Made by a program: the position numbers and the translations under genes. Shown piece by piece: positions 21,585 through 45,386 of a DNA stretch of 64,000 bases; position 1 is the stretch's first letter, and the number at the start of each line of letters is the position of its first letter. The notes beneath the pieces are model-generated. The model was given only the letters and a program-made list of their open reading frames with translations, was not told the DNA's origin and did not search any database. This stretch comes from Macrostomum hystrix (taxonomy: Eukaryota; Animalia; Platyhelminthes): positions 4,278,001-4,342,000 of the forward strand of contig CATNEN010000039.1 in assembly GCA_950097015.1 (NCBI GenBank). Reading direction: 5' to 3'.

Positions 21585-21836
21585 ATAATAATAATAATCA
21601 TCATCATCATTGCAGAGAGGCTGTGGGGACTAGCACATTATTTTGTGACACTAGACCCGCAGCCAGCGAGGAGGCCATTCTGCCCATTTCGCTGACTCCT
21701 GAGCACACACGGATACCGTACGCAGGCACACACGTACACCGGGTCTGTACATCTGCCCTGACTTTCTCATCGTCAGGCAGTGTACACTGTCACTGTGCCT
21801 TGGAGGTTGAAACACAAGGGCGTAAATTGCACCAGC
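21585..21836 (-). mobile_element. SINE family A, 5'-truncated copy
   Basis: Reverse complement of the 3' two-thirds of the 27896-28276 copy (ctgccctgactttctcatcgtcaggcagtgtacact; gacccgcagccagcgaggaggc), with a short tandem tail. Confidence 0.85.
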
Positions 21837-25379: not shown

Positions 25380-28300
25380 ATGGAGCAGATTCGAGCCAAG
25401 GCCGCCAGTCTGCGCCTTTTGCTAAACCGGGTCGACTCGCGCAAGGAGCTCATCGGCCAGGTCAACGGCTTCTTTGACGACGCCGTCGCGCAGCTGGAGA
25501 GCCGTCGAGCTGAGCTGCTGGCCGACATCCGCAGCCACTCGGTGCCCGCCGATCAACAGGCTCGCCTGCTGGGCGTCGTCTCCGACATTGAACGCCTCGC
25601 CAAGGACGCGCCAGCCCTTGGCGTGTCGGCGATGGGGCCGGGCCGGCTTCGCGATGCCGAGGAACGACTGGACGCCTGCCTGGGCCGGGAGCCGGAGCTT
25701 CTACAGAGCGGCCAGTTCGACGCCCAGCTGGCTAGTCGCAGAACTGAGCAGCTGTTGAAGTGCCTGACGATCGGCTGGCAGGACGAATGGTCGTTGAGGC
25801 GCCAGGCTGACAATCCGTTCGCCACGTCGGCGGCCGATGTCGAGCCGGACGACGACTGCTTCGCCGGCCCCGACGGCGATGTCGGTAGTACCTGCGACCG
25901 CAGGGACAGTCTGGACGGGATAAAGGGGTCGGCCTATCAGCTGCCCGACTGCGCCTTGGACTTCGCGGCCGTGCTGCAGTTGGACGGTTCGGACAAGAAG
26001 TCGGACGCCGTTAGTAGCCGTGTTGCGTTTCAACCAGATCCCCATGGATTAGGCTCCGATGCGAATCTCCCATCTAAACAAAGCATTACTCTGAACAAGA
26101 AAATGTGCAAACAGTCTAGTGAAATATCTTTCTGGCAAAACGAACACAAAAAGTCAAGTTTTCATTAGAATCTATACCTTTATATATATAATAATAATAA
26201 TAATTTCATGCAGGCGGGCTGTAGACAATGGCACATCATTTGCTGACACTAGACCCGCAGCCAGCGAGGAGGCTATGCTGCTCATTTCGCTGACTTCTGA
26301 GTACACACGCACACAGATACTGTACGCAGGCACACGCTCACACAGGTGTGTATATCGGCCCTGACTTTCTCATTGTCAGGCAGTGTACACTTTCATAGTT
26401 CCTTGAAGGTTTGCTATCAAGGGCATAAATTGCATGACAAGCCCCCAAGCCTTTTCTCCGCGGCTGCGCCCCAAATGAATGTGGCCTCGCTGCGGAATCG
26501 AGCTCAGGGACCTCGTTGCGAGAGGCAAACATGTTAGACCGCTCTGCCACTCACCCCATTCAAACCTTCAATGTGAAGGGGACGATGTGGCTGAATGTGG
26601 CTGAACGATAGTATTTTCCTGAGCTCGAATCCGCTGCGAGTCCAAATATTTTTCCATTGAGCAGATGAAGGGGGTTGTGGTCTAGTGTTAGAGCGTCGGA
26701 CTCACGACTTAATGGTGTCGAGGGTTCGATCCAAGCCTCAACTGGAAAAATGTGTCCTTCGGCATAGCTGTGCATTGTTTCAGTTCACCCAGCATTGGCT
26801 GGAGTGATTAAGGGTAGGTTTGGCGTCCCTCCCGGCGTCCAGTCCATGGACTGAACAGCCGTACGCAGATGTCAGATGCGTTGTGCAATAGCGCTGTCGA
26901 CTGCACATCTGGCCCGATCGTGGCGAGTGTAGTTAAAAAGTTAAATAAAATTATAAGTTACAACCCTTAACACTCTTGTAACATTACTTTGAGTAGTCTC
27001 TTATTGTATGTTTTTTCTCTAATTGCAAGAAATTTATTCGTTGTCTTTTTTAATTGCACAGCCGCACAAGCGGACGCGAACTCGACGAAAGAAGCTGTCG
27101 CCTGAGCCGCTAGTGCAGCAACAGCTGCGTCAACAGCAGCAGCAGCATCGGGTTAAAGTAGACGCTGCCAATGCTGAATCTCTCTGGTCTGATTGGGGAA
27201 TCAGTTCTGCTGCTGAGTTGAAGGTCAGTGCCTCAATGGTTTTAACATTTGTACTAATTAGCATAGACTATCCCAAGACCATTAGGAGCGTCTGATAGAC
27301 CTACAGTTTTCCAATTAGAAACAACTCCTATGTTTGTTAACGTTTCAGCCGATAACATTTTCGCAAGCACTGGCGAATCGGCCGGACATTGCCGCCAAAG
27401 GCGCTTTCGACACCCGCAGCCGTCCGACATCGCTGGCATTTCTGCACGGCAGCTTCTATGTGCTGGAGACTGCCGCTGGCGACGGCGGCGTTGTTCGAAT
27501 CTACGACAGGCGCGGCCGCTACAAGCACCCGCTGCCGATACGCTCGGGCGGCAGCGTCCACCGGATTCGAGTCTGCCACCAGCGCGGCTGGCTTATTCTT
27601 GTTGACCGCTGCGCCAGCCGGGTACACTGCGTCAAGAGCAACGGCCTGGTTGAGGCCAGCTACGGGCCCAGCATTACTAAGCGGTGCGGGAAGGGCGCCA
27701 GCCAATCAGGGGCAAGGATCCTGGAGAGAGAATCGACGAGACGCCAGCCAATCAGGGGAATGGATCCGGGAGAGAGAATGAAAGAGATGCCAGCCAATCA
27801 GGGGCAAGGGTCCAGGAGGAGAATCAAAGAGACAGACGTCAGCAAATCGGGGGCATGAACGGAAGAGAGAGAGAAAGACTGGTGGGGCGCCAACCCGACC
27901 AGTTTAGGGGGGTCGGTGGCAGAGCGGTTAACGCGTTTGCCACTCGCACCACAGTCCCTAAGTTCGATTCCACGGCGAGGCCACATTTATTTGGGGCGCA
28001 GCCGCGGAGAGAAGGCATGGGGGCTTGTCGTGCAATTTACGCCCTTGAGGGCCAACCTCCAAGGCACAGTTCGAGTGTACACTGCCTGACGATGAGAAAG
28101 TCAGGGCAGATGTACACACCTGTGTGAGCGTATGCCTGCGTACGGTATCTGTGTGCGTGTGTGCTCAGGAGTCAGCGAAATGGGCAGAATTGCCTCCTCG
28201 CTGGCTGCGGGTCTAGTGTCACCAAACTATGTGTCATTGCCCGCAGCCCTCCTGCAATTATTATTATTATTATTATTGGGGCGCCAACCAATCAACAGTG

Positions 28301-29713
28301 GGCTTATACGAGTAGAGCCAGACCAATAGCCAGACAATGTTTTAGCGTGGCGTTGAACTACGGTGAAGGAGATGGTGCAGATTATTATTTTAAAATGTTT
28401 CAATTCAGTCCCTCCATGTGTTCTCATTTCCATACTCTCAGATTCGCATTGCACCAGCCCGAAGACGCGATCTGCACTGGCGACCTGCTGTTTATTGCCT
28501 GTCCCAGAGTTGGCATCTTCATCATCTCGCTGTCGCCGCCTGTTGCTAACGAAGATGTCAATAGCACCGCTGGTGGCGTCACGACGAACGTCGCCAATAG
28601 CGAAGCGGACGAAGGCGGCGAGAATTTCCGGGTGACGCAGAGCAACGCCAGCCTAGGCCTGAACTGTCCGGTGCGCCTGGCATGGAACTATTCCGAGCAC
28701 TGGCTGCTGGTCATCGACCGCGAGCCAGGCAGCGAGGGCCGCTATACGGTGCATCGGTTTCGCTTCGAGCGAATTGCCGGCGTCGGTGGCGGCGGCCGGC
28801 TGATCCGCTGGTGCGGCCGGCCGCCTCTGCTGGATTCGCAGCCGGATTCGGCGCCGCCTACGGCTCTGTCTTTTCGCGGCAACGTGCTGATGTCTCTGAC
28901 TGCCGCTGATGGCTGCGGAAGAATCATGCGGATCCCGACTGGTTGGTGCCATTGTCCTTCAGTCCTCGTGTCCCTTAGCGTATCCTTCAGTCATTCAGCT
29001 TGTCATCATTCAACTATTAAGTCCTTCATCTTGTCGTCCTTCAGTCTGTTTTTCAGCCCTCAGATCCTTCAGTGTGTCCTTCCACCTTTTTGATCAGTCA
29101 GCGTCAATAATCCCTCAATAATAATTATTGCAGGAGCAATGTGGGCAGTGGCACATCATTTGCTGACACTAGACCCTCAGCCAGCGAGGGGGGCGATTCT
29201 GACCATTTCGCTGACTCCTGATCACACGCACACAGATACTGTAAGCAGGCACACGCTCACACAGGTGTGTACATCTGCCCTGACTTTCTCATCGTCAGGC
29301 AGTGAACACTTCAAATCGTTGGAGCCTTGGAGGTTGGCCCTCAGGGGCGTAAATTGCATGACAGCCTTCTCTCCGCGGCTGCCCCCCAAATGAATGAGAC
29401 CTCGCCGCGGAATCGAGCTCAGGGACCTTGGTGCGTTAACCGCTCTGCCACTGACCTCCCCCCAATACGCCCTCAATTCTCCATGCAAAACATTGTGCAG
29501 TGAGTGAATCAGAATCACATAAATTTCCACTGTCAACCAGGTCGCGTATTCGATCAGTTCTCAGCCGACAGTGGCGGCGACGTCGACGGCGGGCTTCGCT
29601 GGTCGATCGTAGTGGCGGCTTCTGGCTGGTCAGTGTCGGATGCGTGCTACATGAACACCCAGGAGTTCGCCATCTGCGACTCGGCCGGTGTCTGCGTCCT
29701 GAGCCTGACCTGA
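25380..29713 (+). CDS. G9: coiled-coil + beta-propeller family protein; exons 25380-26009, 27062-27223, 27349-27683, 28442-28941, 29541-29713 (~599 aa)
   Basis: All four GT-AG junctions are phase-compatible and the total (1800 nt) is divisible by 3. N-terminus close to G8; conserved phase-2 intron after GPSITKR; CPVRLAWN and terminal FAICDS motifs. Confidence 0.75.
26182..26563 (-). mobile_element. SINE family A, full-length copy in G9 intron 1
   Basis: Reverse-complement match including the tRNA-like head (ggaatcgagctc; ccgctctgccact) and the (ATT)n tail. Confidence 0.85.
26670..26955 (+). mobile_element. tRNA-derived SINE family B
   Basis: A box TGGTCTAGTG and B box GGTTCGATCC, followed by tgtgtccttcggca...cagttcacccagc (resembles conserved animal SINE central domains) and an A-rich tail; body unrelated to family A. 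Confidence 0.6.
27695..27860 (+). repeat. Degenerate ~45-bp tandem repeat (gccagccaatcagggg core, x4) in G9 intron 3
   Basis: Core recurs at ~27697, 27743, 27789 and, degenerate, ~27838, separated by purine-rich spacers. Confidence 0.7.
27896..28276 (+). mobile_element. SINE family A, full-length copy in G9 intron 3
   Basis: A/B boxes (TGGCAGAGCGG, GTTCGATTCC), (ATT)n tail, 13-bp TSD tggggcgccaacc at 27883-27895 and 28277-28289. Confidence 0.9.
29120..29469 (-). mobile_element. SINE family A copy in G9 intron 4
   Basis: Reverse-complement match with small internal deletions; ccctcaat TSD at 29112-29119 and 29470-29477. Confidence 0.85.
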
Positions 29714-30539: not shown

Positions 30540-30927
30540 GGATGGCTAAGCGGAGTTTTGGTTTGGTGAGTGGTTAAGCGAAGGATGGGGTGGGTGACTG
30601 GAAAAGCGGATGATGGGGTGGGTGAATAAGCGGAGGATGAGGTGGGTAAGCGACTAAGCGGAGGATGATGGGTAACTAAGCGGAGGATGATGGGTAACTA
30701 AGCGGAGGATGATGGGTAACTAAGCGGAAGATGTTGGGTGACTAAGCGGAAGATGTTGGGTGACTAAGCGGAAGATGGTGGGTGACGAAGCGGAAGATGT
30801 TGGGTGACTAAGCGGAGGATGGTGGGTGACTCAGCGGAGGATGGGGGGTGATGAAGCGGAGGATGGTGGTTGACTATGCGTTGGATTGGGTGGGTGAGTG
30901 GTTAAGCGGAGGATAGGGTGGGTGACT
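30540..30927. repeat. G-rich ~21-26-bp minisatellite upstream of the PINK1-like gene
   Basis: Unit approximately gactaagcggaggatggtgggt. Confidence 0.9.
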
Positions 30928-31124: not shown

Positions 31125-34100
31125 ATGGCCACTAAAGCGCTCGTGCTGGCCAAACGCGTGGTCATTGGCGCCAAACGGTTGCCGTTGCTTCAACTGCTTC
31201 GACATCCGCGACTCACCTGGTCCCGGTTGCTTAGCAATGCGACAGACCAACTGCGCGTGGCGAATCAACCGCTCCTAACAGCAGTTGGTCGCTATGGCAA
31301 CGGAGGGAATAGAAATGATAGAACTAATGTTCTATCATTTCTCTCCGCTAGGGCGCAGAGAATGCTGGCGTTTCTATCGCGACCGGGCGCCGTCAGCGCC
31401 GGCGGAAGGCGCCTGATCCCCCTGGCGGCTCTGTCGCTCGGCCTCGGCCTGATCGGCGACTCCAAAGTCGCCGAAATTCACCGTCGGCCAACCTTCGCCG
31501 AGGAATCTTCGTTTGCAGCCGCCGGCCAAGAGGCGGCCCGCGATCGCGCCTGGGAGGCCGCCGATCGAGCACTGCCGAGGCCTACTGGACTCGACGAGCT
31601 CCGCTTGCTGCGCCTGGTTGGCCTCGGTGGCAACAGCGGAGTGCTGGAGGCGACATCAAAGGACGCCGCCGCACGGCTGGCTGTCAAGCGCTACTTCAAT
31701 CCAAGCATCGAGTCCACCGCCTTCTCCAGTCTGAACCGCGAGTTTGATCGGGAGCTGCGGCTGCTGTCGCGGCTGTCGCATCCCGGGGTGGCCAAGGCTG
31801 TCTCCGGCTTTGTGGCTGCGTTTCGACAGGCGCCGGGCGACCTGATTGACGCCCCGGCCTTCATGCCCAGGTGAGGGAAGAGAGCCTCGGTACATTGGCC
31901 GTCCCGGACATTCGACCCCTGAGCACACATCTAGACTTTGAATTTCTCATCGTGTACACTCTCACTGTGCTTTGGGGGTCAGCCCTCATGAGCGCAATGG
32001 CAAAGCTGAATAGTGCGCATGTGTAGTTTTTGGGGAATTGTGGAAATAGGCGCCAGGCACAAGCGCACAAAGCCGCAGTGACTTTACCGCGCTGGCAATT
32101 GTTACGCCTGAGACATGACGCGCAGCTTTCGATTGAGGACAAGGCGTCATGCGGAACAATGCTTTATTGCACCTGTATTTATTTGTCACAGTTAAAATGT
32201 AAAAATGTTCCGATTAAGAATGTTCTAATTTTCCGGTGCTGAAGTATTCAGTAGCTAAGAATAGAGCCGCTATCCTTTGCGATACAGGAAGCCTTGATGC
32301 CAATAGGGTCGAGCCTTTTCTGTTTCCCTCGACTGGCTCCATTCGCTTGACATTGATTAGATTGACTTCTTACCTGTGTGTCAGACTCATGCATTCAGGA
32401 TGTGCGCTTGTGCCACTGAGAGCAGTTCTAAAATGCGCCTTATGTCATACGCAATGGCATGACAATCCACAAAGCCTTCTTTTTTTAATAGTGTCGTGTC
32501 GTTTAGAGAGACTCACATCACTTATATAGAACGCGAAACACAAGTACAACGTGCGATATTATTGAGCGGTGGCAACGTGCCACGCCCTAGGCATGTACAT
32601 TAATAAGTTAGCGAAGAGTTAAAGGACATTGGCGGCCCCGCGCCCGCCCACGCTCAGGCTATCCATGCGCCTGGCCGCGATAGACCGACGGCGCCACATC
32701 TCCCCGTCAACGGAGGACCAGACGATCGGGTGGAACACCCTTGTTGCTGCGCTCACTTCGTCTGGGCACCGGAGTTGCATTTGTCTGAAAGCTGCCAGCT
32801 GGACCGTCCTGCACCTCAGAACCCGGGAGTGAAGCCACCTCAGAGGCGGAATCTTTTCCTCCGTCGTCCCTCCCAGGCAAGTGACCAGCTGGTTGCTCAT
32901 TGCCGTCAGGTAGTGGGCGGATCTGATCCCGATGAGCGAGCACCGGCCGACCATCCTCTCGGGTGACCACGGCGGTGTTGTGCCCAGCCTGTACCACGAA
33001 ACGCGCAGACTCCGTAGGGCTGCCGGCACGAGCCTGGTAGATGACAGGCGCATCGACACTGAACGTCAGGGTCAGTGGGCTCCTCAGTTGTCTGCCCATC
33101 AGCGCTGACGGACTGCCTCGGCCGTCGCTCCTCGGAGTCGCCCTGTAGTTCAACAGCAACTTGGCCAGATACGCATCAAAAGATCCGCGATGCACCGGAA
33201 ATGCCACCAGACCCCGTTTGACAGTCTGGACCATCCGCTCTGCTAGGCCGTTGGACTCCGGGTGGTACGGTGGCGAGTGTATCTGCGAGCAGCCGATTCT
33301 CCGCAGCCAGTCGCGCAGCTCGCCGTCACAGAATTCGGCCGCGTTGTCCGAGACCAGCGTGCACGGGACACCCAGCCTGGAGAAGATGGCCCGCAGAGTG
33401 CGCAAAGTTGTCTGGGCGCTCCGGTCTGGTACTCGAACCGCCTCCGGCCAGCCAGAAAACGCGTCCACGACGATCAACAGATAGCCGACACCAGGCACGT
33501 GCGCGTGGTCCATGTGCACTCGTTGCCATGCGGTGCTTTCCGCGGGCCAGGTGTGGGTGGCGCGAGCCGGTGGAGTCCGGATCTCCGTGCATTTTGCGCA
33601 TTGCTTGACGTAGCGTTCCACATCGTCGCAGTGTCCGGGCCACCAGGCTTCTCTCTTTAACCGGTTTCGTGTCGCCAACGCTCCGCTGTGGGAGTCTCCA
33701 TGCGCCGCTTGAAGGACTCGAGAGCGCAGCCCTGCCGGAGGTACGATCAGGTCACCCAGACAGATGATGCCGTCTTCCACCGTCAGTTGTTGCCGGACAC
33801 TCTTGTACGGCCGTTCTGCCGCCGAGCAGTTGCTCCAGACGTTGTTCTTGATTCGCTGTCGGATGCTCCGTAGCACAGGGTCAGCGTCAGTCGCCTGTTG
33901 AATTTCGTTTTGTTTCAGCACGTCAGTCTCAGTCCAATGAACGAAGCGACTCACCTCCTCTTTAGGATTTTCGAACGAATCCTCAAACTCCAGTCTGGAC
34001 ATAGCATCGACGTGTGGAATGCAACTGCCACGAACATAGACAATGTCGTAGTCGAATGCAGCCAACTGGATAGCCCAGCGCATGATCCTTGCCGATGTCA

Positions 34101-35518
34101 CCTTTGGCAGCTCCTTCGACGGACTGAAGATGAACTCGAGCGGCTGATGATCGCAGTTTAGCGTGAACTTGGACTCGAAATCCAATGGGGTTTCCCCGCG
34201 CAGGTTCGGATCCTGCTTGCGACGCCATTGTCGTGTCGTTTAGAGAGACTCACATCACTTATATAGAACGCGAAACACAAGTACAACGTGCGATATTATT
34301 GAGCGGTGGCAACGTGCCACGCCCTAGGCATGTACATTAATAAGTTAGCGAAGAGTTAAAGGACATTGGCGGCCCCGCGCCCGCCCACGCTCAGGCTATC
34401 CATGCGCCTGGCCGCGATAGACCGACGGCGCCACAAATAGTAAATTGCATCATTATTAATCTCGCTTAATCTGACACTGCAAATTCCATTTATCTACCCG
34501 ACAGTTCGCTGCACGACGACGGTTGCGGCAGAAACGCCACCTTCTACATGGTGATGCCGCTGTACGATGGCAGCCTAGCCGACCTCCTGGCAGCTCAGGG
34601 GCCCATTGGTCGCGCCGAGTCGCTGGCGATGCTGGCTCAGCTGGCTGAAGCGGACGCCTACCTGAAGGGTTCCGTCGACGTCGCTCACCGCGACATCAGG
34701 TCCAGCAACGTGGCCGTTCGCGGCGTCGGACCAGATCGGCGTCGTCTGGTGCTTATCGACTTTGGTGCCGCCGTCTCGCCGGCGAAAATGCCGCAGCCGC
34801 ACGAGAGCGTTGTGTCGTGGGGCAATTCGCACCTGGTTCCACCTGAAGTGGCCAGAGCTGAACCGGGTCCAGGTAGGCTTTTAACTGGAGTAGTTTACCT
34901 GTTAGACACAAGTGCTAACCTGTGAGACACTAGTGGTCACCTGTTAGACACAAGTGCTCACCTGTTAGACACAAGTGCTCACCTGTTAGACACAAGTGCT
35001 CACCTGTTAGACACAAGTGCTCACCTGTTAGACACAAATTGTCACCTCTCTGCTAGTAAATCTTTCGCAAGCTTCTCTGCCTATTCTTGTGATATTCAGA
35101 ATTATAATCCTCACGCACAACCCGCTGCTACTCAGATTCTGTCATCGACTACAGCCTGGCTGACCTCTGGGCCATCGCCACCCTGGCCTGGGAGCTGGTC
35201 GGCCTGAAGAATCCTTTCCTAAGCGGCAGCCGCAGCTCGCGCCAGCCGTATCAGCCGCAAGACCTGCCGAGTCTCGCCGATCAACTTGGCGGCCGCGCCG
35301 ATCGCCTGCTTCGTCGTCTGGCCCTAGCCGCGGATCCCGCCGACCGGCCTACCTCAGACTGGGTCGCGAGGGCGCTGCGACGCCTGCAAGGCGAAGAGCA
35401 TCGCCGACAGCGACGTCGCCAGCTGTTCGCCAGATTGACGCCCGAGGAGCTGCTTGAGTTCTCGGCTGCTTTGCCGATGTACTGGCTGCGGCCTCTGCTG
35501 TTGCTGCCACTAGTGTAG
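31125..35518 (+). CDS. PINK1: PINK1-like mitochondrial Ser/Thr kinase; exons 31125-31870, 34505-34872, 35136-35518 (~498 aa)
   Basis: Arg/Leu-rich presequence; TM-like LAALSLGLGLIG (cf. PINK1 LAFGLGLGLI); VGLGGNSGV G-loop; LAVKRYFNPSIES; SLHDDGCGRNATFYMVM (PINK1 insertion-3 region); HRDIRSSN; DFG; GNSHLVPPEVARAEPGP; VIDYSLADLWA..WELVGLKNPF. Splice phases are consistent. Confidence 0.85.
32707..34185 (-). CDS. Truncated pol: RNase H C-terminal remnant + complete integrase (no gag, protease or RT)
   Basis: KFTLNCDHQPL..RIMRWAIQLAAFDYDIVY (RNase H end); HGDSH...CAKC zinc finger; HMD / SDNAAEF / SNGLAER DDE triad. No stop codons; annotated start is a TTG within tRNA-derived sequence. Confidence 0.9.
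   Translation of the reverse strand: MDFESKFTLNCDHQPLEFIFSPSKELPKVTSARIMRWAIQLAAFDYDIVYVRGSCIPHVDAMSRLEFEDSFENPKEEVSRFVHWTETDVLKQNEIQQATDADPVLRSIRQRIKNNVWSNCSAAERPYKSVRQQLTVEDGIICLGDLIVPPAGLRSRVLQAAHGDSHSGALATRNRLKREAWWPGHCDDVERYVKQCAKCTEIRTPPARATHTWPAESTAWQRVHMDHAHVPGVGYLLIVVDAFSGWPEAVRVPDRSAQTTLRTLRAIFSRLGVPCTLVSDNAAEFCDGELRDWLRRIGCSQIHSPPYHPESNGLAERMVQTVKRGLVAFPVHRGSFDAYLAKLLLNYRATPRSDGRGSPSALMGRQLRSPLTLTFSVDAPVIYQARAGSPTESARFVVQAGHNTAVVTREDGRPVLAHRDQIRPLPDGNEQPAGHLPGRDDGGKDSASEVASLPGSEVQDGPAGSFQTNATPVPRRSERSNKGVPPDRLVLR
34169..34227 (+). other. 59-nt copy of tRNA-Ser(CGA) positions 27-76 including CCA (extended primer-binding site; not a tRNA gene)
   Basis: TTGGA-CTCGAAA-TCCAA anticodon arm, long variable arm GGGG-TTT-CCCC, T arm GCAGG-TTCGGAT-CCTGC, acceptor 3' strand, G73 and CCA; no D arm or 5' acceptor strand. 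Confidence 0.92.
34896..35046. repeat. 21-bp minisatellite in PINK1-like intron 2
   Basis: Unit cacctgttagacacaagtgct, about 7 copies. Confidence 0.9.
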
Positions 35519-35529
35519 ACTTGGCGTCT

Positions 35530-36307
35530 GAGACTGGGCCAGCGGAGGGTGGGTGGGTAGGTGAGTGATTGAGCGGAGTGTGGAGTGGGTAGGTGAGTGA
35601 CTGAGCGGAGTGTGGAGTGGGTAGGTGAGTGACTGAGCGGAGTGTGGAGTGGGTAGGTGAGTGACTGAGCGGAGTGTGGAGTGGGTAGGTGAGTGATTGA
35701 GCGGAGTGTGGAGTGGGTAGGTGAGTGACTGAGCGGAGTGTGGAGTGGGTAGGTGAGTGACTGAGCGGAGTGTGGAGTGGGTAGGTGAGTGACTGAGCGG
35801 AGTGTGGAGTGGGTAGGTGAGTGACTGAGCGGAGTGTGGAGTGGGTAGGTGAGTGACTGAGCGGAGTGTGGAGTGGGTAGGTGAGTGACTGAGCGGAGTG
35901 TGGAGTGGGTAGGTGAGTGACTGAGCGGAGTGTGGAGTGGGTAGGTGAGTGACTGAGCGGAGTGTGGAGTGGGTAGGTGAGTGATTGAGCGGAGTGTGGA
36001 GTGGGTAGGTGAGTGACTGAGCGGAGTGTGGAGTGGGTAGGTGAGTGACTGAGCGGAGTGTGGAGTGGGTAGGTGAGTGACTGAGCGGAGTGTGGAGTGG
36101 GTAGGTGAGTGACTGAGCGGAGTGTGGAGTGGGTAGGTGAGTGACTGAGCGGAGTGTGGAGTGGGTAGGTGAGTGATTGAGCGGAGTGTGGAGTGGGTAG
36201 GTGAGTGATTGAGCGGAGTGTGGAGTGGGTAGGTGAGTGACTGAGCGGAGTGTGGAGTGGGTAGGTGAGTGACTGAGCGGAGTGTGGAGTGGGTAGGTGA
36301 GTGACTC
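35530..36307. repeat. 32-bp G-rich minisatellite immediately after the PINK1-like stop codon
   Basis: Unit gagtgactgagcggagtgtggagtgggtaggt, roughly 23-24 near-identical copies. Confidence 0.95.
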
Positions 36308-38031
36308 TCCTGGGCTGATTAAGGTATCAGAAGACTTTATCTTCATCTTGCGTCATTAAGCTATGTTTTCCGTCATAAAAGCAATGCTCGTATTTCCTTA
36401 CTCAAGATTATTATACTTTCGAAACTTTATTAAATTTAATAACGCCCGTTCGATTGCATTAACCTGCATTAACTTTTGTTGAATAATATGTTTATTCAGA
36501 ATCACCGATGACAGGTGAGCGCAGGCTGACTGTGTTAGTGGGCAGTGGTCAATGGGAGTTTTCGTTTTTTTAACACTGTCACCTGCTGCTCTGTGTCGCG
36601 AGTTTTCTGACTGCTTCAGTCAAAATCTCTGGTGTTATTTCTTGCGTTTTCGCATTTTCGGCTAGCTGTTTCATAACGCTAAGCTAAACGGAAAACTTTA
36701 ATCGTAAATAAATACAGTTTCTCTACTATTTTTCATCATACTTTCAGCCTTGTTTCAAATATTACTAAGCAGAGCTGCATCGTTCTTGGTTAACTTAAAA
36801 TTCGATTACTCTTCATTGCCGCTCATTGGGCGCTATCGAAGCAGGCTGATCTGTCTATGGTAAAAACTATTTTTATTCCAGATGCTATGTAAAGATGTCC
36901 ATGTTCCAGGCCCAGCTGGAATTGCTTAAATTCCATATTTGAGCACAGAGACTCAGAGAAATCCCAACCTTGGGAGGTGTTATAGACCATTTGCAGAGTG
37001 GGAATTTTTATCTGGGATTATTGATTGAAACTCCCTAAGCAACTCAGGCGTGCGAGGCCGATTTCTGAGCAGTAGTTGAGACTCTGCTCACAGGTGGCTG
37101 CGAAGGAATGAAGAGATGAAGGCTGGGGTGGGAGGAAGACGGTTGCCACGGCCGGAGAGCCGTCGGGTTGATCAACTGCTCGCGTGCTGAGTCGCCCAGG
37201 TCTGCCGTGTCTGATCCGCCAGGCGCAAGTGTCAGGGCTGCTACAGCAGACTGCTAATTAGCGCCAAACACCTTTAGGACTTTGATGATTTGAGTCCGCA
37301 CTGAGTCTAGTAGGATCCCACCTGCCTGTCCTACAATGCCCAGCTGTTGCGTGAAGGATAATGTGGTGCCAAATGAAGCGTCCTCGCCGTTTGTACCAAT
37401 AGCACGGTCGTGTCTATCAGCCAGCCTGTCTGGGTACTATGGTGGTGCAATATTATCCCTGTGCGATCAGCAAGTGAAGCTTTTGCATTTTGAAGGGCCT
37501 TCAGTGTAGGGGTTAGTATAAATTGTGCATTTTAAAGGGGCCTATAAAACCTACTGTTAAAAAGCGATATATAAATATATTTACATCGTTGACTCTAGTC
37601 CGCTAAATGATTAGCCTGAATCTCCCTGCCAATCAGAAAGCGTTCTTGCTGCGAGCAGAAACAGACGAGCTGTGCCCCGAGTCTCTGCCTTGTTTTCTCT
37701 CGATTTTCTCTCGATTTCTAGCATTTCCGTGTGCGCGTGCGTGAGTGTCTGGGCGCTCTTTCAAGCCTTTTCGCTTCGTTCTGACTTCATTGAATGAGAA
37801 GCCTTGCTTTTTGAGGCCAGCTAATTCTTTATAAATATCGCTAACCCGGGGCCTCAGCATCTTTTTGCCAGATATTTTTTGCGCGCTACTTTGAGCTCGG
37901 GTTTGCCGCTTCTGCAGGCATGCAAGCAAAGCCAACATGCTCGTAAGTCCCTTTTCTGCTTTCACTGCAACCGCTGCATGCTGCTTTGCTGATTGGATTG
38001 AACATCTGCCGCTTCATCGAGATGAAAAATG

Positions 38032-38533
38032 CCTCTGCGCCTCAACCCCTCAGTCGTGTCGATTACTCCGCCACTCACCTCAGTCTTGTGGATTACTCCG
38101 CCCCTCAACCCCTCAGTCGTGTGGATTACTCCGCCCCTCAACCCCTCAGTCTTGTGGATTACTCCGCCCCTCAACCCCTCAGTTGTGTGGATTACTCCGC
38201 CCCTCAACCCTCATCGTGTCGATTACTCCGCCACTCACCTCAGTCTTGTGCATTACTCCGCCCCTCAACCCTCATCGTGTGGATTACTCCGCCCCTTAAC
38301 CCCTCAGTCGTGTGGATTACTCCGCCTCTCAACCCCTCAGTCGTGTGGATTACTCCGCCCCTCAACCCCTCAGTCGTGTGGATTACTCCGCCCCTCAACC
38401 CCTCAGTCGTGTGGATTACTCCGCCCCTCAACCCTCAGTCGTGTGGATTATTCCGCCCCTCAACCCCTCAGTCGTGTGGATTACTCCGCCCCTCAACCCC
38501 TCAGTCGTGTGGATTACTCCGCCCTCAACCCCT
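38032..38533. repeat. 33-bp minisatellite
   Basis: Unit cccctcaacccctcagtcgtgtggattactccg with shorter variants. Confidence 0.95.
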
Positions 38534-38904
38534 AGATAGATAGCACGGTGCAGTCAACTGGGGATTGATGTGGCAACAATGGCGGGTTCCCACAGTGCTG
38601 CCTCTAGATATCAGACAGCGCGTGGACTCGAGTACGCACTTGTATTTCGTCACGACCCAGCCGGGAAACAGGCGACAAAGTGGACCGTCGAGATCGTGTC
38701 GGCTTTGTTGGGCTGGTGTAGCAAAAAGTGTAACAAAATCCGTCGATGGTTTAGTCACGCCACGGTGCGTCGCGGCCTCTCTCCTGGGCTGCCCGATAGC
38801 AGACAAACCGAGATAGACATAATTTTTCTACCCTCCACTGATGCACGAGACAAACTTTTAACACGGTTTCTATCCGCCAAAATCCACTGCTCTACTATCA
38901 GTAC

Positions 38905-39058
38905 TATAATGATAATGATAATTGCGGGAGGGCTGCGGGCAAATCATTCAGGTACACTTGACCCGCAGCCAGTGAGGAGGCTATGTTGCCCTTTTCGCTG
39001 ACTCCTGAGCACACAAGCACACAGATACTGTACGCAGGCACTCACTCTGACTTTCTCC
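38905..39058 (-). mobile_element. SINE family A 3' fragment
   Basis: gacccgcagccagtgaggaggc...gactcctgagcacac...gatactgtacgcaggcac, with tail. Confidence 0.75.
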
Positions 39059-40925: not shown

Positions 40926-43900
40926 ATGAACTTTGGCGGCTTTGGCAGCAAAGTGTTCGACTGGGTGTCTAATCAGGCCAAGCAGGTCACTGACCAGGCC
41001 GAGAACGCTTTTAGGGGCATCCAGGATGAGATCAGCGTGCGGTCCGGGACCGGCGACGGAGCAGCTGCCGCCACCGCCGCCGCGTCCTCCGATGCCACTG
41101 GGTCCGACGCCACAGTCTCGGTTCCGTCGACAGTGCCAAAGCTGCCAATCAGCGAGGGCGGCACCTGCCAGGTGTGCTGCCGGGTGAAGTACGCTGAAGG
41201 CTACGGACACCTGTGCCACTACTGCAAGCTTAAGACTTGCGCCCGCTGCGGTACAAAGACCAGCATCAAGCCGACTCAGGTGAGGCTGGTTTGTTTCTAA
41301 CTGTCCAAATATTATAAAATTGCAATAACAACGATAGCTAGTAGTAATATTCGTGGGCACTAGCGCATTAGGCAATTCTGCCAATAACGCTGACCCCTGA
41401 GCACACCTACTCACTGCCCCTGGCTTTCTCATTGTTGATCAGTGTACTCCACTCTACTAACGCGGAAGCCGCCTTTCCGAGACAACTGCTCCACAAATTA
41501 ATCAAGCGTTAGAGTTCGAATTTATAAGCCTTCAAAGCTAGTATTTCATGACTGTTAAAGTGTGCGCCCCTGTGCCGCTCGCCTCTGCAGGACGTGGCCT
41601 CCAGCGACGCAGCCGCCGCTGCAACGGCTCGGGTAAGAACTCGGGCCGGTGAGCCCCGATTCTCCCTGGGGAAATTCGCTGGGAGTTGACCTCGAAAATT
41701 ATTCTCCCCTCAGCCTGAAAAGTCACGTGATGCACTCACTCATTTTACACTTTTATTTTTCATAAGAATCCTTTTGAGTTGAGCCACCGTGACTGCATGT
41801 CTTTGGTTTCTGAGACGACACAAAGCTTTCTGTTTTGTTTTATCTTACACTTTTCTCTGCAAGCCTTGTAATCCTTGGCTTTGTGCTTGACCGTGTCATT
41901 CACCCGAGTCTCGTTTAGCAGCACTATGACGCGAATGTGTTTGGTCAGCCAGCCCTTTGCTCGCCTGGCTTGTCCATAATCACCTATTTGCATCGCTTGC
42001 CACTGCACTTTGCAAAATTTATCCACTATTAAACTCCAAACATTCTCTCTCTCTTCCCTCTCTCCCCTTCTTCCTTCCTATTCCCTCTCCTTTCATTTTC
42101 CCCTGTCCGTTCCAATTCCCTTGCCCGTTCCTATCCCCTTGTCCGTTCCTCCCCTTGTCCGTTCTTATCCCCTTGTCCGTTCCTCCCCTTGTCCGTTCCT
42201 ATCCCCTTCTCCGATCCTCTCCCACCTTCTCCGATCCTCTCCCACCTTCTCCGATCCTCTCCTATCTTCTCCGATCCTCTCCCATCTTATCCGATCTTCT
42301 CCCACATTTTCCGATCCTCTCCCATCTTCTCCGATCCTGTCCTATCTTCTCCGATCCTCTCCTATCTTCTCCGATCCTCTCCCACCTTCTCCGATCCTCT
42401 CCCACCTTCTCCGATCCTCTCCCATCTTCTCCGATCCTGTCCTATCTTCTCCGATCCTCTCCTATCTTCTCCGATCCTCTCCCACCTTCTCCGATCCTCT
42501 CCCACCTTCCTGATCCTCTCCCATCTTCTCCGATCCTGTCCTATCTTCTCCGATCCTCTCCCATCTTCTCTGATCCTCTCCCACCTTCTCCGATCCTCTC
42601 CCACCTTCTCCGATCTTCTCCCACCCTCTCCGATCCTCTCCCACCTTCTCCGATCCTCTCCCATCTTCTCCGATCCTCTCCCACCTTCTCCGATCCTCCC
42701 ATTTTCTCCGATCCTCTCTGATCCTCTCATCTTATCTGATCCTCTTCCACCTTCTCCGATCCTCTCTCCCCTTCCTCGATCCTCTCCCATCTTCTCCGAT
42801 CCTCTCCTATCTTCTCCGATCCTCTCCCATCTTATCCGATCTTCTCCCACATTTTCCGATCCTCTCCCATCTTCTCCGATCCTGTCCTATCTTCTCCGAT
42901 CCTCTCCTATCTTCTCCGATCCTCTCCCACCTTCTCCGATCCTCTCCCACCTTCTCCGATCCTCTCCCATCTTCTCCGATCCTGTCCTATCTTCTCCGAT
43001 CCTCTCCTATCTTCTCCGATCCTCTCCCACCTTCTCCGATCCTCTCCCACCTTCCTGATCCTCTCCCATCTTCTCCGATCCTGTCCTATCTTCTCCGATC
43101 CTCTCCCATCTTCTCTGATCCTCTCCCACCTTCTCCGATCCTCTCCCACCTTCTCCGATCTTCTCCCACCCTCTCCGATCCTCTCCCACCTTCTCCGATC
43201 CTCTCCCATCTTCTCCGATCCTCTCCCACCTTCTCCGATCCTCCCATTTTCTCCGATCCTCTCTGATCCTCTCATCTTATCTGATCCTCTTCCACCTTCT
43301 CCGATCCTCTCTCCCCTTCCTCGATCCTCTCCCATCTTCTCCGATCCTCTCCTATCTTCTCCGATCCTCTCCCATCTTCACCGATCCTCTCCCATTTTCT
43401 CGGATCCTCTCCCACCTTCTCCGATCGTCTCTTACAGTCTCCGTTTGTCTCCCCTTCAGTTTTTATACTATTGCACTTCCTTTTCGTTTTTTTGCTTCCT
43501 GTGTCCCTATCAGTAATTTCCGCGTATTCTCACTTTGATTTGATCTGCCTTTATTCTCCCTCAATGCCTTGCCCGTCCTCCACGGCTGCACGCCTGCGAA
43601 AGCTCTCGCCAGGCTTATTAACTGAGCCCCAGTCGTAGGCGCAGGCGCGAATCCCAGATCTAGTTCAGTGCGGGTCGGGCGGGAGAGCGACAAAATGGCG
43701 AGGCGTTCCAGATTTAATCTCTCTGGGGAAGACGCGACCGAGTTAGGAAGAATGCGAAAATCCTAAATCATATATGCATATATGACCGCGAGACTCAGTT
43801 AGTGAGGACGACTGTTTCAGTAGTGGAGGAGTGGGGCGGAGAGATGCTGCAGAGCAAGGCGAGTGGAGGGCAGTGCGGAGGCGGCGGAACTTCTTGCGAT

Positions 43901-44344
43901 TTCTCCCGCAATTATTGAACTGGCTCCTGGCACTCGTCCTCTTGCCTCTTTCCTCTTCCCCGGCGGCCCTCAAAGTCATTCTCTGAGTCCTATTCCGCAC
44001 CTAGTTTCTGTCTCAGTGAGAAATCTTGCTTTCCTTCTAGGACGCCACTTCTCCCATGTCTTGCACTTTAATGTGGCTCAAAAGCGTTCATGAAGTTCTA
44101 CGATTTCAGCCTTCGCGAACCAAGCAGCCTCTCAGCACTTGTTAGTGCGAATAAACAAAACTGAATTCATGACATTTGCGAGGCCGCTTACATTTAACAG
44201 AGTGTCTGGGTGTGCGCCAACTGTCAACCAACCGGAAGGCGAAGCAGTGCTGCCGCCACAGCTGCTGGATCCAGCGCGACATCGGCGACCGCCGCGAATG
44301 TAGCCACAGAGAATAGAAAGCAGCAACAGCAACAGCAGCAACAA

Positions 44345-44375
<31 letters not shown>

Positions 44376-44427
44376 TTCAGACACAGCACCAGAGGGAGCC
44401 AAAACCGCAGCAGCCTCGACAAAACCG

Positions 44428-44515
<88 letters not shown>

Positions 44516-45386
44516 AAGCAGCAGCAAAGGCAGCCAGTCAATAGGACCAATTCTCACGGTCTAGCGAGGTAAACCATTCGCTGTAGACGTACAGTGCGGA
44601 ATCTGCAGGTGGTGATAGATTTGGAAATTGTAATTTCAAGTGTAGGTGAGGCTGAGCTAAAATATTACTCCAGCCATAAGAGAAATTCGCGGAGAGACGG
44701 GGCAACTGTTTGTTCTCTCTAATTGGTATCGAGAACAGAAGTACCTCTAGAAAAAGATAATTACGAACTCGAACTCGTGCGTTTATTCCCTAAATATATA
44801 ATGCGTAAGAGGCATGAGGTCTTCCTAGCTGAGACTTGTCATTAACGGGGCGACTGAAATAGCCTCATTGATGAAACCTCGCCTGCTAAAGGAGCTGCAT
44901 ATTATGTAACACAGTGGATTGTTCCAGTGACACGCAAATGAATCTTCAATACTCACAATGTCCATCCGCAGACAAAATTCTCTAAACGATGGTCTGGAAT
45001 GTCAAAAGCCGCGGCAGGAGGCTGCGCCGGCCTCGGCGGCTGAGGACGACGTCGCATTGGCCACCTCGACGTTGCGTTCGAATTCGCGCGTCTCGGCGTC
45101 GTCGGCAACGGTGCGGGCTCGGTCTGAGTCGCGCGGTCAGCATTACCAGCCACTGCCCCAGCACCAGCAGCAGCAGCGGCACCAGCAGCATCAACGTATT
45201 TCAAACGAGCAGCAGCAACAGCAGCCCCAGCAGCGTCTAAATCGCCATCCTCCTGGACATGACCCAGCTGCTGTGCCGTCGGCCAGTTTCGATAATACCG
45301 CTTCTCCGCGACGATACACAGGCGGCCGAATCTACGATCCTTCTGGTCAGTACAACGTCGCCCCCGGACCAGCAGGGAACAGAACA

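Follow-up and report, generated by a model that had tools for sequence, protein, structure and literature searches.

A 59-nt copy of the primer tRNA-Ser(CGA) joined to RNase H in a defective Ty3/gypsy element of Macrostomum hystrix

A stretch of 64,000 nucleotides of the genome of the flatworm Macrostomum hystrix (contig CATNEN010000039.1, positions 4,278,001 to 4,342,000; hereafter the window) carries on its minus strand, at 32492-34435, a Ty3/gypsy-type long terminal repeat (LTR) element of 1,944 bp in which the primer tRNA has left a copy far longer than a primer-binding site (PBS). Mature tRNA-Ser(CGA) with its CCA end templated 59 nt of the plus strand of this element in the exact register of the PBS, position 58 of the tRNA was copied as G, and the tRNA copy is joined to the RNase H coding region, with about 2.3 kb missing (gag, protease, reverse transcriptase and part of RNase H). 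Very probably, the copy comes from a compact Ty3/gypsy element and became defective when plus-strand synthesis ran through the tRNA primer and then made an aberrant second jump. The mechanism is already known; what is new here is its occurrence in inherited copies of invertebrate retrotransposons, the use of a tRNA-Ser primer and the frequent reading of position 58 as G. The parts of the element are as follows, with positions in the window:

34436-34440, minus strand: target-site duplication on the 5' side, CTATT on the element strand (direct reading; the same 5 nt stand at 32487-32491)
34229-34435, minus strand: 5' LTR of 207 nt with TG...CA ends, 100% identical to the 3' LTR (repeat comparison)
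34228, minus strand: spacer, a single A between LTR and PBS, the same in all family members
34210-34227, minus strand: canonical 18-nt PBS position, the complement of tRNA-Ser(CGA) positions 76-59, a perfect match (comparison with host genes)
34209, plus strand: tRNA position 58, read as G; the six host tRNA-Ser genes of this type all have A
34169-34208, minus strand: read-through part, tRNA positions 57 to 27 (T arm, long variable arm and CGA-bearing anticodon stem-loop), with no difference from the host gene
34169-34172, minus strand: overlap at the junction of tRNA copy and pol, which on the element strand is CCAA with six relatives and AA with L037 (alignment)
32707-34185, minus strand: open frame of 492 codons, the C-terminal part of RNase H followed by integrase with its zinc-binding and core domains (list of open reading frames; PF17921, PF00665)
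32699-32708, minus strand: polypurine tract GACGGGGAGA, immediately preceding the 3' LTR and shared with other members of the family
32492-32698, minus strand: 3' LTR of 207 nt, with the same 51-nt deletion as the 5' LTR (alignment)
32487-32491, minus strand: target-site duplication on the 3' side, CTATT on the element strand (direct reading)

The copy has what is expected of an LTR element, namely TG...CA LTRs, a target duplication, and a PBS and a polypurine tract adjoining the LTRs. Its domain matches are limited to PF17921 and PF00665, because the rest of pol is deleted.

The tRNA copy runs from 34227 down to 34169 as the 59-nt complement of tRNA-Ser(CGA) positions 76 to 27, directly past the 5' LTR and its single A. 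Read on the plus strand, 34169-34227 includes the T arm as well as the long variable arm and an anticodon stem-loop whose anticodon is CGA, the CCA lying at 34225-34227. From the complement of CCA the match to the primer tRNA runs on without a break, and in register, beyond the 18-nt PBS. The observation is confirmed as real and lies far beyond chance. In the host genome (220 Mb in 42 contigs), two tRNA-Ser(CGA) genes, L039 and L040, equal the copy at 55 of 56 gene-encoded positions, the sole difference being position 58, which is A in both genes and G at 34209. The CCA is present in the element copy and absent from both genes, as eukaryotic tRNA genes do not encode it. Since the copy equals the host genes except at 58 and has a CCA that is not gene-encoded, the template was the mature tRNA. 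A tRNA gene or pseudogene was considered and rejected, since positions 1-26 are absent, CCA is present and ARAGORN finds no tRNA gene anywhere in the window.

A genome-wide pattern scan with the T arm and acceptor, allowing up to 2 mismatches, returned 12 places, and its reversed-pattern control returned 0. Half of the places are tRNA genes (2 CGA, 3 AGA and 1 UGA) and the other six are CCA-bearing copies beside LTRs, that in the window included. All six related tRNA-Ser genes have A58 and G26, and none with G58 was found at this mismatch limit. A preliminary description of the window had given the 59-nt match past the PBS at 34210-34227 and the G at 34209, and had made its reading depend on host genes with A58, G26 and identity elsewhere; all of its coordinates hold, and the genes are as it expected.

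The other five CCA-bearing copies stand beside LTRs that align neither with the window LTR nor with one another, except for L073 and L074. These two are copies of one duplicated segment, so that five independent events are counted, the window copy included:

Window copy: 1,944-bp element, identical LTRs, duplication CTATT; tRNA 76-27; position 58 is G
L071: 948-bp element, identical 201-nt LTRs, duplication ATATC; tRNA 76-37; position 58 is G
L072: LTR and tRNA copy followed by unique DNA, no mate LTR within 8 kb; tRNA 76-38; position 58 is G
L073/L074: tRNA copy with the final 19 nt of U5 repeated behind it; tRNA 76-40; position 58 is G
L075: 1,424-bp element, LTRs 94.7% identical, duplication ATTTC; tRNA 76 to the variable arm; position 58 is A

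Two further cases, L071 and L075, are therefore short elements with 5-bp target duplications of their own, L075 being joined into integrase with a 3-nt overlap, as judged from the start of the match. Position 58 is G in four of the five independent events and A in one (L075), and random mutation does not account for four of them having this one substitution at this one site. The association of G58 with read-through, as well as the fact that all four changes are to G, would also be accounted for by a rare variant tRNA-Ser gene or allele with G58, which could not be methylated and which reverse transcriptase would copy faithfully as G without a stop, G58 then being the cause of the read-through and not its scar. 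This we consider improbable, since the genome-wide scan gives A58 genes only, every G58 copy has CCA and adjoins an LTR, A58 is near-invariant in tRNAs and L075 is a read-through copy that retained A58. The misreading of a modified base is the preferred explanation, and the G at position 58 fits what is known of 1-methyladenosine (m1A) when an A comes after it: the misreads are then T and G, seldom C (Hauenschild 2015, PMC4787781).

The families to which the other copies belong were studied by means of match coordinates and patterns of 35 places. In three of them the normal members have a PBS of 10, 13 and 15 nt without any extension; for the L073 family no normal member with a 5' LTR-PBS junction was found. 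All four tRNA-Ser-primed families examined thus have a PBS shorter than 18 nt (10, 13, 15 and 15 nt), so that a strong-stop copy of the normal 18 nt would in every case leave 3-8 bases unpaired. An A at PBS position 5 (CpG to CpA), present in two unrelated families, mismatches every tRNA-Ser gene found. As regards the single loci, L072 (G000:C38:6642777-6652776, locus ~1750-2080) has a 48-nt tRNA-Ser copy followed by a 14-nt palindrome, 8 nt of which repeat upstream flank sequence, and it has the look of plus-strand strong-stop DNA that was captured, not of an integration with two ends. L073 (G000:C41:368240-378239) and L074 (G000:C10:298292-308291) have a 46-nt tRNA copy and the 19-nt U5 repeat, followed by sequence unique to both segments.

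At least 30 places in the genome match the window LTR. Seven LTR pairs were compared, five of which bound elements of 4.26-4.30 kb with 5-bp target duplications. These full-length relatives are compact Ty3/gypsy elements; the one translated, L033, has a single 1,221-codon frame encoding gag, protease, reverse transcriptase, RNase H and integrase, with the domains PF13975, PF00078, PF17917/PF17919, PF17921 and PF00665 in this order, which is the gypsy order of pol, and a gag zinc knuckle read from the translation. In ten members that keep the 5' LTR junction the PBS is the same 15 nt, overlapping the gag start codon, and none of the ten has an extension past it. Compared with the window copy, the family PBS has 2 differences in its first 15 positions, and beyond position 15 it no longer follows any tRNA. 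An exact match to it was found in no tRNA gene, the nearest being Ser-UGA (14/15) and Ser-CGA/AGA (13/15). The first 15 bases of the window copy are those of tRNA-Ser(CGA), including the two positions where the family PBS differs. The PBS of the window copy carries the tRNA sequence rather than that of the family, and therefore the fixed copy descends from the plus strand.

One could consider the long match as a selected, extended primer-binding region gripping more of the primer, given that some retroelements pair with more of the primer than the PBS. This is extremely improbable and was rejected: the segment is found in this single copy and in none of the ten family members, it has a mismatch at 58, it sits in a copy without gag, protease and reverse transcriptase, and the normal members of the other families are without it too. 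The preliminary description had likewise tied its reading of the segment as a product of read-through to the absence of the 59 nt from autonomous members, and that reading stands in this respect.

As for the deletion, a gapless alignment (97.1%) pairs element nt 264-1923 with nt 2566-4225 of L033, and everything past the tRNA insert is collinear with a parent-type relative up to the 3' LTR. The 492-codon frame is collinear with the L033 polyprotein from about residue 770, which, because the gapless alignment starts at nt 2566, is where the tRNA copy joins the RNase H region. At the joint (34169-34172) the tRNA copy shares CCAA, 4 nt, with six of the seven relatives that keep the site, and AA with L037, the overall closest full-length relative (97.7%); an overlap of at least 4 nt is expected by chance with P ~0.016, and one of at least 2 nt with P ~0.16. 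Owing to this overlap of 2-4 nt, the last tRNA base copied lies anywhere from 31 to 27. The short microhomology foreseen in the preliminary description was thus found, and its sequence of read-through past 58 and strand transfer into pol, with deletion of gag, protease and reverse transcriptase, is supported; the end at 27 joins RNase H as it had claimed, but is not exact.

The full junction is single-copy in the genome. Both window LTRs are without 51 nt (family LTR nt 187-237) that all other family LTRs, of 257-258 nt, have; relative to the LTRs of L031 and L033 the gap begins 9 nt past the TATA box, with its joint at ~34249/34250 and TGA at both edges. L031 (G000:C34:2207369-2211923) and L032 (G000:C29:2859562-2863845), the nearest by LTR identity, are themselves deletion derivatives without the junction site; these youngest relatives have internal deletions, lengths of 3,627 and 3,356 bp and normal PBSs, and in the alignment one of their deletion joints shows an 11-nt overlap. 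No intact member of this young subfamily was found among the 30 best LTR matches.

The sense-strand complement of the tRNA, in PBS register and with CCA, looks like plus-strand strong-stop DNA copied from the attached primer, the copying having gone 41 bases beyond the normal 18-nt end. A sequence of steps may be proposed on this basis. The tRNA-Ser(CGA) would have primed minus-strand synthesis on a PBS which it matches at 13 of 15 positions, a match that may in turn have hindered the proper second jump. Plus-strand strong-stop synthesis would then have bypassed m1A58, placing a C opposite, and copied the tRNA to about position 27, where reverse transcriptase was either stopped by N2,N2-dimethylguanosine (m2,2G) at position 26 or simply left the template. 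The unpaired 3' tail presumably paired over 2-4 nt with the RNase H part of the minus-strand DNA, and synthesis went on from there, so that the plus strand would lack the ~2.3 kb. After integration, replication or repair would have fixed the plus-strand version. The loss of 51 nt flanked by TGA would fit a premature first jump from U5 into U3 and, being in both LTRs and in no other copy, it probably dates from the same cycle. In all likelihood the defect arose in a single faulty round of reverse transcription, whose product integrase then inserted, since the target duplication is intact.

Several points weigh against this account. The evidence for m1A at position 58 of tRNA-Ser is indirect, namely the conservation of A58 and a Trm61 homologue (242 bits), which the host encodes together with one of Trm1. 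All four misreads are G, set against the mixture of T and G given by commercial reverse transcriptases. Position 32 shows no scar in the copy, despite 3-methylcytidine (m3C) being present at this position in the tRNA-Ser of yeast and mammals and being a barrier to reverse transcription. The true parent is absent from the assembly, so that the size of the overlap (2 nt or 4 nt) is uncertain, as is the time at which the LTR deletion took place. Finally, the junction is known from the assembly sequence alone, and this is also what favours an assembly artefact or, alternatively, a deletion after integration combined with the insertion of an unrelated tRNA retrocopy. Either is highly improbable: the tRNA copy lies in the exact register and orientation of the PBS, one base past the LTR, and replaces the family PBS, the 100% identity of the LTRs leaves little time for secondary events, and the same architecture is found at four other loci.

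With regard to the place where copying ended, the preliminary description had proposed a stall at m2,2G26, for which the odds are about even: it is plausible, though unproven. In the host genes the base preceding the match is indeed G26, beside C25, and G26 together with the D-stem pairs G10-C25 and C11-G24 and a long variable arm makes up what we take to be the determinants of dimethylation by Trm1, an enzyme which the host encodes. Moreover, m2,2G26 is among the commonest barriers to reverse transcription of tRNAs and is near-stoichiometric, m1A and m3C being more variable (Behrens 2021, PMC8062790). No fossil copy goes beyond position 27, and two of the five endpoints (27 and 38) stop one base short of a base predicted to be modified (P ~0.05). 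An end unrelated to m2,2G26, with reverse transcriptase leaving at an arbitrary spot that happened to match pol or running off a tRNA-fragment primer, has an equal claim. Only one of the five cases reaches 27, and there the endpoint is ambiguous by up to four bases (27-31); the other four copies end at 37, 38, 40 and in the variable arm, the first two of these endpoints being compatible as well with 3' tRNA halves produced by a cut in the anticodon loop.

The window copy looks dead on arrival, because its junction is single-copy, 51 nt are lost in both LTRs and integrase is out of the gag frame: the gag ATG at 34226-34228 opens a frame that runs 81 codons into the copy, out of frame with that of integrase. 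No multiplication of any extended copy was found in the genome, where the window junction and the 948-bp case are each single. A multiplying non-autonomous family of the kind known as terminal-repeat retrotransposons in miniature (TRIMs) was accordingly rejected, the deleted structures being single-copy and L073/L074 one duplicated segment, and the suggestion that such read-through is a route for generating non-autonomous elements goes further than these data reach. Short LTR elements that have no coding capacity but include tRNA-related sequence are also known as TRIMs and Helenus (Kojima 2024, PMC10886601), and in this the window copy resembles them. In Helenus, however, the tRNA-like part lies inside the LTR, acts as promoter and occurs in multi-copy families (PMC10886601), whereas here it lies outside the LTR in PBS register, is without positions 1-26 and is unique. 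A Helenus-type element was rejected on the grounds that the tRNA part is outside the LTR and single-copy.

The closest known system is HIV-1 (human immunodeficiency virus type 1), in which 44 defective proviruses have 7-54 nt of tRNA-Lys3 past the PBS at a deletion joint (Hardy et al. 2025, Commun Biol, PMC12657518). The mechanism was named deferred second-strand transfer, and its explanation by those authors is read-through of the plus strand past m1A58 followed by transfer to a downstream minus-strand site; 5 of the 44 inserts were changed at position 58 (PMC12657518). The window copy is alike in having an intact 5' LTR and PBS with more of the primer tRNA at the 5' edge of a large deletion, and its LTR deletion matches the premature first-strand transfer with a U5 joint of the same paper. 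It differs in that germline-fixed gypsy elements of flatworm type primed by tRNA-Ser are involved here, as against somatic proviruses primed by tRNA-Lys3, and in that A58 was read as G in four of five cases, a frequency and a kind of change unlike the 5 of 44; the G at position 26 of this tRNA-Ser is a further difference.

In the HIV-1 system m1A58 is the signal needed for plus-strand strong stop, with the normal end after 18 nt (Fukuda et al. 2021, PMC8599865). It is this step that is concerned here as well, and in both cases loss or bypass of the stop leaves a plus strand that mismatches the minus strand. That work was, however, biochemical and in cell culture, and the products it predicted were un-integrable (PMC8599865), whereas here they are integrated with normal duplications. 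The misreading of m1A and the barrier at m2,2G26 are, likewise, what is exploited in the mapping of modifications by their reverse-transcription signatures (PMC4787781; mim-tRNAseq, PMC8062790), the difference being that such mapping uses laboratory enzymes and cDNA libraries, while here the reverse transcriptase of a retrotransposon wrote the signature into chromosomal DNA. In a literature coverage that is incomplete, no papers on germline retrotransposon fossils of this kind were found. The non-primer tRNA that Colicelli and Goff (1986) reportedly described between LTRs is a different phenomenon.

Because the mechanism had already been described, the value of these copies is illustrative and not conceptual. 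They indicate that an error of reverse transcription seen in cell culture and in HIV-1 reservoirs occurs also in the germline of an invertebrate, and that its products integrate with normal target duplications. The recurring misread at 58 in unrelated families is indirect evidence, drawn from DNA sequence only, of a modification at position 58 of tRNA-Ser that blocks reverse transcriptase. Furthermore, as all families involved have a PBS of 10-15 nt, the idea arises that short or mismatched PBSs make the second jump error-prone. It is possible, though rather doubtful, that this genome has enough read-through scars next to LTRs for them to be a DNA archive of tRNA modification. If so, mining for such scars across genomes could map blocking modifications where tRNA has never been analysed, and misreading as G only could mean either a signature of the retrotransposon enzyme or a chemistry at position 58 unlike that of m1A as read by laboratory reverse transcriptases.

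As regards its surroundings, the element lies antisense in an apparent intron of a protein-kinase gene on the plus strand (31125-31874 and about 34503-34925), whose upstream open reading frame is a weak match to positions 4-64 of the Pkinase profile and whose downstream exon covers positions 75-170; the N-terminus of the gene product resembles a targeting presequence. Tandem arrays occur near the element at 35425-36460, 42065-43000, 30608-30915, 34876-35068 and 38012-38568, with periods of 32, 10/20, 22, 21 and 33 nt, and a long CAG/CAA run occupies 44304-44561. A dispersed repeat of ~200-300 nt is also present in the window in 4 copies (21611-21831, 26209-26520, 29129-29435 and 38917-39047), with 61-94% identity.

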